NCBI GenBank assembly: GCA_023334545.1
Contig: JAADVB010000128.1
Span: forward strand, 1 to 51,424
Origin: Salisapilia sapeloensis CBS 127946
Lineage: Eukaryota; Protista; Oomycota
Direction of reading: 5' to 3'
DNA: 51,424 bases
In this document: piece by piece, positions 15,429 to 24,176 of the stretch
Layout of the letters: the number at the start of each line of letters is the position of its first letter
How positions within the stretch are numbered: position 1 is the first letter of the stretch
Program-made: the position numbers and the translations under genes
Notes under the pieces: model-generated
What the model was told of the DNA's origin: nothing
What the model saw: the letters and a program-made list of their open reading frames with translations, nothing else
Database searches by the model: none

Positions 15429-17228
15429 ATGAAAAAGAAAAGAGAAGGAACTTCGGAAGAAAGACCGACGATGGCGCAGGAGACGCCAGCGAAGCCGCCT
15501 GCGCCCCGAGGAAGGTTTTCCACGCCTAATGTGAGTCTAGCTGACGGTGTAACTTTGCCGAATAAGAAGAAGGGAGGAGCGAAAGGAGCGTTGGAGCTAG
15601 CGATGTTGGCGGCGGACGTGCCATCGGATAAGCCGCCTGCGACACCAGTGAACAAGGCTGGTGGGAGGAAAAGAAGAGCAGTAGAACCGACGGGTGCAAG
15701 TCGAGTAGTCAAGTCTGTACTGGAATTTGCAGAGTCTGTAAAGAAGCAGAAGCGGGATAGACTGAGTGTATCACCGATCCAAGAGCCCACGACGCCTCGG
15801 TTGTCGTCACCGGAAGAGGACGAGGACCTCCGGTCCATCCAAAAGACACTGTTCACACCCAAGAGCGACCGCAAGTCTAAAAAGAGAAAGCCGAGGGCAG
15901 ATAGCAATGTAGTTAAGAAGCTTTCGTTTGTGAGTGACATCAAGTCCGAATCTACTCCGTCCAAGATCCTCCTGCAGGACTGGTGTGTCGTGTGGCCACC
16001 AGTCGTAGAAGCCGATATGACCATGTCTATTGGCAAAGTCCAGCCACAGTTAGATATACGAGGAATGGTGGATGGAAAGGAACAAGTGTATCGAGTAGCG
16101 AGGCGGAAGACGCATTCGACCTTTGAGTCTGTCGGTAGCGTAGCAGTAGAGCTGGACGATGGGATGTCGACGGTTAAGGCGGAGGAGGGACAGGTGCCGT
16201 CACAAGTGCAGGAGCTGATGCAGGATGGACTGCCGCAGCGAGTGTTGAAAAAGTTTAAAGCGATTGTAAACGAGTTAGATGCAGGTGTACGTCGCGATGT
16301 AAAGGAAGTGGAGCCAGAGGCAGAACCAGAGCCAAAGACTCCACTTAAAGAGATGACAGAGATGAAGCGAACGAAGAGCGGTCGAGTCGTGTCGCCTGTG
16401 CTGGATTGGTGGCGTGGCGAACGCAACGTTACGACGGTGGCTGGCGTGAAGAAGCATGAAGGGTCTCCCTCTCAGCTGGACAAGTCAGCTCCACATACCA
16501 AGAAGCGTATTATTCGGACGCTTCCGAAGAAACCTGTGAAGAAGGAACCGAAAAAGGAACCGAAAAAAGAGGACATCAGTTGGAGTCAAGAGCAACTGCA
16601 GGCGCTAGCAATAGCACAGCGCAACGTCCGAACGACTGGTAACTACTGGGCGAATGTGGCGAAGAGAGTGGCTGGGAAGACGGCGAACGAGTGCCGACTG
16701 AAGAGCTTGGAGGCGTTTGATGATGCGGCGACCAAGAAGAAGAAGGTGGGGAGAAAAATGAAAGTGGAGATGGACGACAAGGTGCCCAGAGCTGGTACGA
16801 ACAAGTTTAAGAAGCAAGTGCGTCGGTTTGTCCAAGAGTACGAGAAGCTGCATGCGGATGATGCGTTCGAGAACAGTGCTCAGGTGGCTCCAGACTTGGC
16901 GAAAGAGCTGGACGAGCTGGAGGCGCCAGGGACAATGGAGGTCATGCCGAGCCCGGAGAAAGTTGGTGTCGACTTCCTAGAGCCAATAAGCGCGAGTAAG
17001 CGAGATGCTGTCGATGCGTATGTTCGACAGCTAAAAAGAGGGAAGAGCCAGCTCATCAGTCCAGAGAAGATGGCTGCCAAGTCCAAAAAGCCAAAGCATA
17101 ATGTTCAGATGGAAGAGGAAAGTGGTGGGCGAGTGCTTAAAGCCGAGCAGAGTCCTGGGGGTACCACACGCGTGCGAGTGCAGAGAAGTGAATGGAGTGA
17201 CGAAGATGAAAGCAGTGATAGTGACTAG
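15429..17228 (+). CDS. MIS18BP1: KNL2/M18BP1 homologue (SANTA domain, CENP-C-like motif, SANT/Myb domain)
   Basis: SANTA-like region ILLQDWCVV...ELMQDGLPQRV. CENPC motif KRTKSGRVVSPVLDWWRGER. SANT SWSQEQLQAL...YWANVAKRVAGKTANEC. The post-SANT motif RAGTNKFKKQVRRFVQEY...DDAF resembles M18BP1 'KVGTLKRKQQMREFLEQ...DDFF' as I recall it. Confidence 0.8.
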   Translation: MKKKREGTSEERPTMAQETPAKPPAPRGRFSTPNVSLADGVTLPNKKKGGAKGALELAMLAADVPSDKPPATPVNKAGGRKRRAVEPTGASRVVKSVLEFAESVKKQKRDRLSVSPIQEPTTPRLSSPEEDEDLRSIQKTLFTPKSDRKSKKRKPRADSNVVKKLSFVSDIKSESTPSKILLQDWCVVWPPVVEADMTMSIGKVQPQLDIRGMVDGKEQVYRVARRKTHSTFESVGSVAVELDDGMSTVKAEEGQVPSQVQELMQDGLPQRVLKKFKAIVNELDAGVRRDVKEVEPEAEPEPKTPLKEMTEMKRTKSGRVVSPVLDWWRGERNVTTVAGVKKHEGSPSQLDKSAPHTKKRIIRTLPKKPVKKEPKKEPKKEDISWSQEQLQALAIAQRNVRTTGNYWANVAKRVAGKTANECRLKSLEAFDDAATKKKKVGRKMKVEMDDKVPRAGTNKFKKQVRRFVQEYEKLHADDAFENSAQVAPDLAKELDELEAPGTMEVMPSPEKVGVDFLEPISASKRDAVDAYVRQLKRGKSQLISPEKMAAKSKKPKHNVQMEEESGGRVLKAEQSPGGTTRVRVQRSEWSDEDESSDSD

Positions 17229-19209: not shown

Positions 19210-20209
19210 ATGCTCGACCTAAGAGAGACTACCTCCGGCGTGGTCGGCGCCACCTTTTGCGTCTACTCTGGTCTGCCGTTCGATGTCATCAAGGTGCGAC
19301 TGCAGACGCAGAGCTCTATTAACCCATACTACAATGGCGTGCTGGACGCCGCTCGGAAAATTGCTGGTGAGGAGGGCGTCCGGGCGCTGTGGAAGGGCGC
19401 AGTGCCGGCACTCTCGAGCTCTATGATTGAAAACTCTGTGCTCTTCAGTGCAAATGGCATCGTGAAGCGTTTCTGGGTCGCCTCCTTCCTGCGCAACGAC
19501 AGCAACAACTTGTCGACACTCGATGAAGCCTTAATTGGCAGTGCCGCCGGCATCTTCTCCGCAACCGTACATTATCTTCTAAAGGTCTACAGTGCAAGTA
19601 CTAAATGGTAAATGGTCTGTAGGCAATCACGCCTGCAGAAGTAGTCAAGTGCCGTCTCCAGTTCCAACGCAGCCAAATCGGCAAAGGGGGTGGGATCACG
19701 TAATTGTACATTTAGGTGACCGCCATCCTAATGCAAAAGTAGAGTTCCACGGACCAATCGACTGCGTGCAAAAGGTCTTCAGGCAAGAAGGCACTAGAGG
19801 TCTCTTCCGAGGCTACAGCGCCCTGTTGCTCCGCGACGTTCCGTTCAACTTTTTCTTCTTCGGTTGCTACGAGTTCTACACTTCGACCCTAATGCGTCTA
19901 CTCGATCGGTCGTCCCGAAATGAGCTCCATCCTGGTCACATCCTCTTTTGCGGTGGACTGTCAGGCGCCACTGGCTGGAGCCTCATGTTCCCAGTCGACG
20001 TGCTCAAGTCCCAGATGCAAACGGCGGCGCTCAAGGCAGGAGCTAGCACCTCCCTTCGCGGTACACTGAAGCATGTCGTGCAAACGCACGGCGTCCGAGG
20101 CTTGTACCAGGGCTGGTCTGCGGCAGTGCTGCGTGCCTTCCCCGCAAACGGAGCGCTCTTCCTCGGGGTAGAGATGACCCACCGCTTCTTCCGAGCCACG
20201 GGCTTGTAA
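19210..20209 (+). CDS. Mitochondrial carrier (SLC25), ornithine/basic amino acid carrier-like; intron about 19567-19622
   Basis: Three carrier signatures: PFDVIKVRLQ, PAEVVKCRLQ (after splicing) and PVDVLKSQMQ. The motifs ENSVLF, RDVPFNFFFFGCYE and RAFPANGALF resemble SLC25A15/ORC1. The ORF-track start at 19204 is TTG, so the first ATG is 19210. Confidence 0.88.
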
Positions 20210-20241
20210 CAAATCGATCGTTCAGTTTGGAATGGAAACGT

Positions 20242-21917
20242 TTATTGTTTAAAAGCGAGGATGGCGCTATGCTGTCCGCCGGCATCGATCGCCAGGATCT
20301 GAGCGTCCCCGAACTGCGTATTCGTCCACTCGAGCTCCCTCGGCTTGGTCTCGTCCTTTTCCTCGCCATTTCCAAGCGCCAGCATATCCCCGTACCCCCA
20401 TGCAAAGACCTTGTCCTTATCCGAAAGTGCAATCGTATGGTTCGATCCGGCGGACACCATCTTTATCGGCGCATCCGTCGGGAACGTGACTTTGTGCGGC
20501 TTGTCTCGGAAGTCGCCTGTTTCGCACACCTCAAGCATACCGAGCTGCCCCGAGTCGCCTCTACCGAACGTATAGACGTCTCCTTTCAACGTCATGATGA
20601 CAGAGTGGTGCGTTCCTCCACTTACAAGAGATACGTTTTCATCGACTAGTGTGTCCACGAGCTGAAGCTCCTGGCAGTTATCTCTGCTGCCGATACCCAA
20701 TTGACCATAATTGTTCAGACCACACGTGTACAAGTATCCGTTCTTGCTGGTGGAGAAGAGCGAGTGGTAGGAGCCACACGAGATGGACTTGATGGACGGC
20801 AGGGGAGACGAGCCGAGCGTCACTTTGGCTGGAGTCAGGTGCTCCTTGTGCACCATGGACGTGTTGTACTCTCCGGACTCATCCTTGAAGTCCATGGTCG
20901 TCGCACGACCCATTTGACCCATCTCGTTCAGTCCCCACGAGTAGACGCTACCGTCGTGCGTTCGGGCGAGGTTGAAGACCGATCCGCAACGCACTTCGGC
21001 AACGTTAGACAGCGACTTGATCTGGTACGGACGCGTCTGTACATCTTCGTATGAGCACTAGGAACCATACGAGACGAAAAGGTAGAGACGTACCTGCTTC
21101 TGCTTAAAGGAGGACGCCGGCGAGTCCGAGTCACACCATGGCTTGCCCTCTTTGTCTTTGTAGCTGCCCCACGTGAACACTTTCCCAGCGGCCGTGAGCA
21201 CAGCTGTGTGGCAATCTCCACCGACCGCCTAGTTCGCATGACGACATGAGATAAGGATTTTGATTGTATAAAGCAAGAAAATGTACTTGAATGGCCCAAT
21301 GTTGATCCGGACCGAAGCCTTCGACCTTAGCTGGCATGTTCTCATCGCCGTCTCGACCTAGAGCGCCGTCGTCGTTGCAGCCCCAGGAGTAGACTTCGCC
21401 ATAGTAGGTGATGGCGATCGAGTGGAGACCACCGCACGAGAGCTGGATGATAGGAATTTTAGATAAAGCAGAGATGATGCGAGGGTACTTGACAATCATA
21501 TCGTCGTCTGTTTCTACACCATGGCCTAGCTGTCCACAGTCGCCGTTGCCGAACGTCATGGCCTAGTAAGAGTGTTTACATGGTCAATGCACGCCAAAGG
21601 GTACAAGTCAGAGAGGTACATACCGTGCCATATTGATCACCGAACTTGGACATGATCTCACGTGCATAGCGAATGTACTCGCGGGCGTTTTCACACCAGT
21701 CGCCATGGCGGTTTTGATCCCATTGCGATTGCAGAGCGTCCGAAAAGGTGGTGTTGAGCTTTTGCAGGTGCTGAGCGCGTCGCGAGTCGATCTGGCGACG
21801 ACGAAGCTCCGCGTCAGAAGCTCTGGTCATGCCCAGCTCGACATGGGTGTTTCCATTCGCATTCTGAGCCTCGAAGTCCTGCTTGGAGACGCCAGTATCC
21901 TCTCGTCCGCGCTTCAT
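20242..21917 (-). CDS. RCC1: RCC1 (Ran guanine-nucleotide exchange factor) with N-terminal Nup50-like exon; 4 exons
   Basis: Blade motifs match RCC1 proper: TFGNGDCGQLG, SWGCNDDGALGR, VFTWGSYKDKEG, GLNNYGQLG, TFGRGDSGQLG, FAWGYGDMLALGNG and DAGGQHSAIL. Exon 1 (21917-21624, 98 codons) splices in frame via intron 21623-21563. Confidence 0.9.
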
Positions 21918-24176
21918 CGTTATAGTTCGAGCGGTTTGTTGTTGGTACCAAAATTGGGGTATGTTTAGTAGAGGTTATTTTGCGTCTTAAGGAGCAAGGA
22001 GGCTGTGGACAGAGGTGGTGCAGGCATGGCAAGTTGCTATGAGCGCTGTTGAAGTAGCTTCCAGCCTATCTTCAGATCAAGTGATCCTTTCCCTTTACGA
22101 AGCAATACTTTTGTTTTCCTTTTATACTGAATAGAGTGCTTTTGCATGTGCAGAGTCGACGAAATGTCTGTCGTGATTTGATACATGAGATTTGTCGGAG
22201 CTGCTCAGCAATTAAGCGGTGTGTCGAAATATTAGCACGGCAACCTCAGCTTGAGTCACATGCTATAATTTTAATGCTTTGATTCATTCTGTAGTCTGGT
22301 GAGCAAATACATAGTCAATAATTATCCATGTCTGCCATATGTGTACCCCATGGCGGAAGTGCTGGAGTCTTTACTTTCGGTTATAACAGAATCGTACTTG
22401 AAAGCTTTACATCAATACAGATATTGGCATATACTCGAGAAAGCATTAAAACGGTTTCTCGCGTCTGACTAAGAGATATTTATTCAGCTTCAACTGTGTA
22501 GCAGTCTGTTTTAAAGAAAACTAAGAGTGACTTTGAGGTTTTGCAGTATAGTTTCAAGACCTGCCACTTGCTACAACTTGTGTATTGCTTTTCGACAGCA
22601 TGTTGCGTCTATCTAAACATCGGCAGTTATCACATCTTGGCAAGCAGAGAAAAGTGTAGCTAAGAAACAATTATTTTGCTGAAAAAAGCATTCAAGAGGC
22701 AAAATTGCGAAGCTTTATTATGATTGTGACTAATGTAAAAGTAACTTCCGTTGCGGGAGAAAGCTAGGTGCTGGCTTTGTAGCAACTGACTCATTTCATC
22801 ATTTACTAAGCTTCTGTGTACATGCAAGCTCCTACGGTAATCCAGATTGTACCCATCCACACATATATTAATTCAAGGGAATCCTCTTCAGTGAAAGATA
22901 TTCGGTAGAGGTCAGCAAACAGTCTTACGATACAGACTGCTTTTGTATGAAGGGGCACATGCGCGCCGTATCCCATTCCATACCGAGATGTATTCCACAG
23001 CAACGGCGATGCAACGGTCAGCATTTAAAACACTAGGTGTAATACATGGGAACAATCGTACTGTGACGGCAAGCAAATTCGCCTAGTCATAAGAAATGTT
23101 GTCGGACGTAAATTTTTATTGTTCCAACCTGTCCTCCGGATTGTGTGCTATTTAGAAAGCGGTAAAATAGATTAAAGGGAAAGCAAACTTGAAAGAAATT
23201 GATGTCGTAAAGCCATGATCATGATGCTATTTTACGCAGTGAGAGCAAATATGGAAGGCATCCATGTCGTAGACGCTTCATAACTTTCTAAAAGCAAAGC
23301 TGTTGAAGCTTTGACAGTCGTGCTAATGTAATGGCCATGCAGCTTGTTCAGAAAGAATGTGGTTGACAATGCCACTCGAAAATTATTAGAGGGTTAGACA
23401 TTATTTCACCCAGATCTAATGCGGTCAACTATTCGAATGAAGTTACCGTATATGTCTCCAGCTCTTGTGATGCTTGCAGAGTTGCTAATATGACCTTTGA
23501 GTTGTATCAGATAATCTCGTGAAAGATCCTTTAGACCACATAGTCGCAATACGCTATGCCAAAATCTGATCGAAGGAAGGCCAAGTTTTGCAGAAAGCGA
23601 GTTCTTATTCGACAGAAAAGTATGCTCGAGGGCATGATATTTATGGTTTCTATTTTGTTCAATGGGCTAATGTCTGAATTGGTGGGGGACGTGTGCATGT
23701 ACGGAGATAGGTCGATTGGTTGCAGTTCAAGCCGGAAGCTCTTTGGTGACGATTCGGAGTGAAAATTACCGTGGATGCCAATTAACATGGGACCGGATGG
23801 ACGGTAGTCGGTTTCCTGCCGTTTGGGTTGTATATCATTTAAACCTTCCCGCCAATTTCTGATACAAATGCAAAGTGCAGTCGGCCAACTGTTCCAATGG
23901 AGGATAGTGTCGATAAGAACCGAAGCTGTAGCAACCAAATTGTAGTCGTTTCTGAAGAGCTATTCGCGCAGGATAGAATTGATGGATTCTGGGTTGCTAC
24001 CAATGCTTATTTGCACCTTTAAGTCTGAACGCAACCGACGTCATCTCCTTCGCTTCCCCGTCCGGCGCCCCTCGGCAGGGATAGGCAAGACGAAACCGAT
24101 TGAAACGGTACTTGAAGAAAGACTTTTCCGTCCAAACAAATAAAAAGTATTTTCCTCAACTCTTCGTCGAGTGAGA

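Follow-up and report, generated by a model that had tools for sequence, protein, structure and literature searches.

Two protein families, and a contact between them, are the closest described systems to the locus reported here. RCC1 (Srm1/Prp20, Pim1), the guanine-nucleotide exchange factor of Ran, is a seven-bladed propeller preceded by a tail of ~25-45 residues that holds a nuclear localization signal (NLS) and chromatin and DNA contacts. Nup50/Npap60 and Nup2 present, in order, a KR pair, a G-x-F-x-x-A-S-x-x-x-L-x-x-R-x-I motif, a basic cluster and a conserved helical segment, and also have FG repeats, plus a Ran-binding domain at the C-terminus. An interaction of Nup2 with Prp20 is known from yeast, and RanBP3 is known to stimulate RCC1. 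Work published in 2021 showed, in frog extracts and human cells, that Nup50 binds RCC1 and stimulates it in trans; residues 1-114 of Nup50 stimulate RCC1, RCC1 binding is lost in the G25A/F27A and K36A/R38A mutants, and residues 144-189 mediate pore targeting through Nup153 and ELYS (Holzer et al., 2021, EMBO J, PMC8634129). The N-terminal motif of Nup50 and Nup2 includes residues required for the binding of importin-alpha as well as RCC1 (PMC8634129). In vertebrates and yeast the members of the Nup50-RCC1 pair are separate proteins, whereas at the locus described below the corresponding modules are covalently joined, in a Rosetta-stone pattern.

The window, by which we mean the whole 51,424-nt stretch of DNA that was analysed (contig JAADVB010000128.1 of the oomycete Salisapilia sapeloensis CBS 127946), contains a minus-strand RCC1 gene at 21917-20242 with four exons and 499 codons. 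Exon 1 (21624-21917, 98 codons), recognized from its open reading frame (ORF) and sequence, starts with the ATG at 21917. Its product reads MKRGREDTGVSKQDFE...EIMSKFGDQYGT, with ...FGDQYGT as the last residues at 21624, and the peptide that had been quoted for it in the original prediction is its true translation. Residues 1-45 (21783-21917) comprise an NUP50-type N-terminal motif, M-K-R-G-R ... G-M-T-R-A-S-D-A-E-L-R-R-R-Q-I, and residues 46-95 (21633-21782) a helical hairpin, ..HLQKLNTTFSDALQSQWDQNRHGDWCENAREYIRYAREIMSKFG. This Nup50-like head is separated from the propeller by intron 1 (21563-21623), which is 61 nt long, reads gtatgt...ctag and lies in phase 0. Exon 2 (21287-21562, 92 codons) opens from 21562 with AMTFGNGDCGQLGHG, which is RCC1 blade sequence; it encodes the first blades (Pfam RCC1, 2.2e-19) and aligns in a single stretch with residues 38-116 of human RCC1 (5TBK_I). 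Intron 2 (21229-21286, 58 nt) has its GT at 21286-21285 and its AG at 21230-21229, and is followed by exon 3 (21094-21228, 45 codons), an RCC1 blade with 60% identity to RCC1 of Peronosclerospora sorghi. Intron 3 (21037-21093, 57 nt), whose joint was seen in spliced contigs, leads into exon 4 (20242-21036), where 264 codons and a TAA stop at 20244-20242 complete the remaining blades (Pfam RCC1-like domain, 1.4e-58; 55% identity to P. sorghi RCC1). Unlike Nup50 and Nup2, the 499-codon product lacks an FG-repeat region, the head passing directly into the RCC1 blades, and it lacks the C-terminal Ran-binding domain (PF00638), a Pfam scan of exons 2 and 4 returning RCC1 families only; the C-terminal partner of the head is instead the RCC1 propeller.

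Searches with the window gene and with Nup50 were made exon by exon, and full-length work was carried out on an uninterrupted orthologue, the 522-aa protein of P. sorghi (P0005). By orthology, the gene is the genome's canonical Ran exchange factor RCC1. Residues 102-517 of P0005 are collinear, in one stretch, with residues 31-416 of human RCC1 and form the same seven-bladed propeller; the AlphaFold model of the protein has a mean pLDDT of 93.9, and its fold matches 1-10 are all Ran exchange factors of the RCC1/Prp20 type from human, fly and yeast. Within its own 22.4-Mb genome the window gene was by far the top RCC1 match and the single clear orthologue, the other RCC1-like matches lying in very large ORFs with much lower scores. 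The alignment of P0005 with human RCC1 starts at residue 102 of the former and residue 31 of the latter, and it bears out the expectation that the head replaces the usual short tail of RCC1: the ~100-residue Nup50-related head sits where animal RCC1 has its short N-terminal extension.

That head and propeller belong to one protein is evident from contigs of four public runs, which were compared over 20100-22300. Three of the runs (X2, X3 and X5) are samples of one organism, A, and the fourth (X6) is from a second organism, B, that is ~97% identical. The contigs omit precisely 21563-21623, 21229-21286 and 21037-21093, and because these introns are missing with GT-AG borders the contigs derive from spliced RNA. 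In each of the four runs one molecule extends from upstream of the ATG to the stop and contains the whole coding sequence. The exon 1-2 junction, for which a check by cDNA had been proposed, is present in these spliced contigs, and the predicted phase 0 joining of the 98-codon exon to the RCC1 propeller over a 61-nt intron is thereby confirmed in all four runs. Six of the seven differences listed for organism B in exon 1 fall at third codon positions, which indicates that the frame of this exon is under purifying selection. Orthologues are unbroken through the junction (...KFGxxxGxVLTFGSGDCGQLGHG, against ...KFGDQYGT|AMTFGNGDCGQLGHG in the window), MKRxR is the start of all full-length orthologues, and a Logan contig (L006), which is oomycete since an elicitin gene lies on it, encodes the head together with the first blades in a single unbroken ORF that lacks intron 1. 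The original prediction had itself raised a contrary scenario, in which exon 1 is part of a different transcript and the true RCC1 start is the exon 2 ATG at 21559. That ATG does sit close to the start of exon 2, and the RNA label of the runs is a guess; nonetheless, contigs that lack all three introns link exons 1 and 2 in four runs from two organisms, the orthologues are continuous across the same junction, and the substitutions in exon 1 are mostly at third codon positions. A start at 21559 is excluded by the spliced contigs together with the continuous orthologue ORFs, and we assign a separate transcript next to no probability. Two modules that elsewhere are separate, interacting proteins are thus found on one mRNA here and in one ORF in relatives.

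The relationship of the head to Nup50 emerged at the level of the family. Exon 1 of the window, used alone, did not match Pfam NUP50 (PF08911; curated cut-off 22.5 bits) even at E<=10, a single-sequence search of solved structures with the window head did not find Nup50, and nothing relevant came from the ESM Atlas, whether it was queried by language-model features or, with the folded head, by shape. Pairwise BLASTP of the window head against the organism's own Nup50 gave an E of 0.025, and a BLOSUM alignment of the two showed three collinear pieces, head 1-43 with Nup50 2-48, head 51-79 with the end of Nup50 exon 1, and head 80-91 with the start of exon 2, each of which beat shuffles in pairwise comparison (p 0.0005-0.003). 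An earlier profile of 7 head sequences reached 28.7 bits in two collinear domains when compared with Nup50 in HMMER, and when the whole genome was scanned with this profile in six frames the Nup50 locus was the sole non-self match (E 0.0125). The larger alignment, A4, holds 74 head sequences, and its profile matched exon 1 of the organism's Nup50 over 89 columns (hhalign probability 97.8%, E 1.3e-12), with the FG-type linker of Nup50 appearing as one long insertion; this linker, which spans ~75 residues between the two segments in Nup50, shrinks to a few residues in the RCC1 head. When the halves of A4 were compared separately, the first matched residues 1-70 of Nup50 (probability 96.9%, P 1.6e-10) and the second matched the end of Nup50 exon 1 (probability 94.8%, P 5.5e-8, last profile column 43) and then the first residues of exon 2 (P 2.8e-4, from column 44), so that the second match, stopping at column 43 and resuming at column 44, continues over the site of the Nup50 intron without loss of a column. 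Cross-controls of the two halves were negative (P 0.3-0.56). A scan of the genome with the second-half profile missed the Nup50 segment, which is split there by an intron, and gave just an 11-bit chance match.

Comparisons outside the genome gave a concordant picture. PF08911 was matched at E<=0.01 by 44 of the 74 orthologues, two of which exceed the curated cut-off (P0049, 28.4 bits; P0073, 28.7 bits), and no other family recurs; the window head, scanned as the first member of A4, again gave no match. Among solved structures the best match of the A4 profile was residues 1-51 of yeast Nup2, a peptide bound to importin-alpha (E 0.0052), followed by human Nup50 (E 0.58; VGTFSMASEEVLKNRAI, as given by the structure search); the 7-sequence profile did not match Nup50 in the same search, the match requiring the 74-sequence profile. 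An independent, stramenopile-specific extension of RCC1 whose short basic and helical motifs came to resemble those of Nup50 by convergence might be considered, since the motifs are short, the window copy alone lies under every family threshold and the pairwise BLASTP E is just 0.025. It is very unlikely, however, given that matches at P<=5.5e-8 were obtained for each of two distinct segments, in unchanged order and with negative cross-controls, that the match continues exactly over the Nup50 intron, that PF08911 is matched by more than half of the orthologues, and that yeast Nup2 is the top solved-structure match. Judged from these comparisons, homology is established for the family, and the window copy is included by family membership; we therefore regard it as highly probable that the 98-residue head is homologous to the front part of Nup50/Nup2 and fused to RCC1. 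Of the likenesses first proposed from the window sequence, that of the first half to the Nup50 N-terminus (KR...F-x-R-A-S-x-x-x-L-x-x-R-R-I) was upheld by profile matches to the organism's Nup50, PF08911 and yeast Nup2, and that of the second half to a further Nup50 segment (LN..F...W..EY..YA.EI) by a profile match to the organism's Nup50 in the correct order. The comparison of residues 1-98 with PF08911, which had been suggested at the same time, was negative for the window copy alone at E<=10 and positive at E<=0.01 for 44 of the 74 family members.

The genome also encodes a free Nup50, the presence or absence of which had been singled out as a point to check. It contains exactly one PF08911 locus, on another contig (C489, ~15490-17150, plus strand, corresponding to 1480-3139 of L001), and the gene there is complete: it combines a NUP50 domain (3e-08) with SFGG repeats and a Ran-binding domain that is split and, of the two genes, is present in this one only. 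At its N-terminus it resembles human Nup50 (7.2e-05), and a word-index search with its exon 1 gave zero matches. A 61-nt intron (L001 1950-2010) splits its conserved helical segment, ...WIEAAQ / EYLKYADEI, whereas no intron interrupts the RCC1 head at the equivalent position. The fusion does not replace Nup50, and the fused form and free Nup50 coexist.

The conserved positions of the head fall into the same two parts. The family motif is MKRxR, then F-x-R-A-[ST]-x-x-x-L-x-x-R-[RK]-[ILV]; the corresponding stretch of Nup50 and Nup2 binds importin-alpha and includes the positions at which mutations do away with both binding and stimulation of RCC1. K2 and R3 are kept in 69 of the 74 sequences of A4, and counts relative to the conserved alanine (itself 71/74) are 31/74 for G(-5), 59/74 for F(-3), 60/74 for L(+5), 73/74 for R(+8) and 70/74 for R/K(+9); the position equivalent to K36 of Nup50 is not conserved across the 74-sequence family. 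Near-invariant residues are K2, R3, A33 and R41 in the first half and L54, N55, F58 and Y81 in the hairpin. The window copy departs from Nup50 in having M for the conserved F (F27-equivalent), and its glycine is displaced by one, while A, L, R and R are kept; it scores under the Pfam threshold. When the window head was folded with A4, the first half had pLDDT values of 49-82 and the two-helix hairpin of 92-95, and the hairpin of the full-length orthologue P0005 had values of 93-96. The low values suggest that the NUP50-motif half (residues 1-45) is probably flexible, and the hairpin is both the best-conserved and the best-folded part of the head. The hairpin is homologous to the conserved segment that, in the organism's own Nup50, separates the NUP50 domain from the FG repeats; from position and sequence it is a candidate equivalent of vertebrate Nup50 144-189, a segment that in yeast lies within the Nup2 MAR.

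The fusion was at first tentatively ascribed to this lineage, a scope that the survey of stramenopile RCC1 orthologues widened. A search of exon 1 against 1.84 billion representative proteins gave six matches, all of them N-termini of oomycete RCC1, and a search restricted to residues 1-110 of P0005 returned P0005 itself and nothing else; with the whole P. sorghi protein as query, 120 RCC1 orthologues were listed. Those from oomycetes include Peronosporales, Pythium, Lagenidium, Aphanomyces, Achlya and Saprolegnia, and those from ochrophytes include Ochromonadaceae, Pelagophyceae, Aureococcus, Aureoumbra, Parmales/Triparma, Undaria and Tribonema. In a local HMM search the head was present in 116 of 126 RCC1 sequences. 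The fusion is old, for oomycetes and many ochrophyte algae share it in their RCC1.

Several members of the family vary at the N-terminus. Six algal orthologues (P0085, P0092, P0097, P0106, P0115 and P0124) keep MKRxR and the hairpin and are missing the middle F-x-R-A-S...R-R motif, which makes the hairpin the part of the head that persists most. Two metagenome orthologues carry a zinc ribbon of the RanBP2/Nup153 type (PF00641, cut-off 27 bits) ahead of the Nup50-like head, at residues 48-77 of P0059 (32.9 bits) and residues 25-54 of P0069 (34.2 bits), so that RCC1 is joined there to a further module of nucleoporin type. In the cluster of P0073, which has a Pfam-level NUP50 domain, one member bears the EukProt label of a foraminiferan, Bolivina argentea; the fusion may extend beyond stramenopiles, or the sequence may be a contaminant from algal prey.

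Overall, the best explanation of the locus, and a likely one, is an RCC1 with a homologous Nup50 head made up of a NUP50-type motif and a hairpin. Like the N-terminus of Nup50 and Nup2, the first half would be disordered until bound, with KR and R-R making contacts to importin-alpha and the F/R residues making contacts to RCC1. Importin-alpha binding by the head would lead to nuclear import of RCC1, and the fused motif may place a Nup50-like element for cargo release or activation beside the site of RanGTP production, and may offer an RCC1-stimulating contact in cis. The hairpin, for its part, could tether RCC1 to the nuclear basket or to an ELYS-type partner, or pack on the propeller; as the best-conserved part of the head, it must have a partner, perhaps the propeller or else a protein of the basket or ELYS type. 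A role of the head in cis stimulation or pore tethering is plausible, and we place it slightly below an even chance. By analogy with the vertebrate system, the head might both activate and position the Ran exchange factor of which it is part, a proposal that we make tentatively: the NUP50 motif would touch the propeller, or Ran on the propeller, and raise exchange as free vertebrate Nup50 does, and docking of RCC1, at the nuclear basket or at an ELYS-like chromatin partner, would fall to the hairpin. Predicted as a complex, the head and the propeller of P. sorghi RCC1 scored 0.01, a value that counts neither for nor against binding.

The same homologous head could also be an import signal only, that is, an importin-alpha-binding tail without a role in exchange or at the pore, whose high affinity would let it stand in for the short NLS tail found on RCC1 of animals and yeast. 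Those tails bind importin-alpha (the complexes 5TBK and 5T94 are among the fold matches), the head is located where they sit, conservation in its first half is highest at MKRxR and R-[RK], and some algal orthologues are reduced to MKRxR and the hairpin. We nevertheless consider import as the sole function, and a high-affinity substitute for the NLS tail as its form, to be rather unlikely, because the part with the best conservation and the best predicted fold is the hairpin and not an NLS, so that something else appears to be selected, and because F(-3) and R(+8), which in vertebrates are RCC1-binding residues, are kept in most orthologues. If the head does serve as activator and positioner, the Nup50-RCC1 axis would be older than the split between stramenopiles and opisthokonts, and stramenopile RCC1 would be a natural single-chain complex for solving how Nup50 stimulates RCC1.

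Both families and their interaction were already known, and what is new is the domain fusion. Full-text literature searches turned up no description, for oomycetes or stramenopiles, of a fusion between Nup50 and RCC1. The head-propeller architecture is visible in the precomputed Pfam matches of two database proteins, so the fusion was discoverable from databases, yet to our knowledge it has gone undescribed. Its conservation as a covalent unit throughout a major group of eukaryotes is independent evolutionary evidence that the Nup50-RCC1 partnership is real and old, and it highlights the F/R motif and the helical hairpin as the important parts. The fusion is also a compact single-chain protein usable in structural and biochemical work, and it changes the annotation of RCC1 in ochrophyte algae and in oomycetes, a group with important pathogens of plants and animals.

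Two minor observations concern the region ahead of the RCC1 start. The orthologue of Hyaloperonospora brassicae (P0018) has ~50 additional residues (1-50) ahead of MKRxR, probably the result of a mis-called start codon. In the window, just upstream of the RCC1 start, a low-depth spliced contig at 22005-22245 on the plus strand lacks a 73-nt intron (22081-22153) with GT..AG on that strand; this RNA is a contig of its own in X5, at a depth of 6.6 compared with 163 for RCC1, and was merged with the RCC1 mRNA by the assembler in X2 and X3. It suggests that a divergent, spliced plus-strand RNA enters the AT-rich 2-kb gap at 22039-24030 upstream of RCC1.
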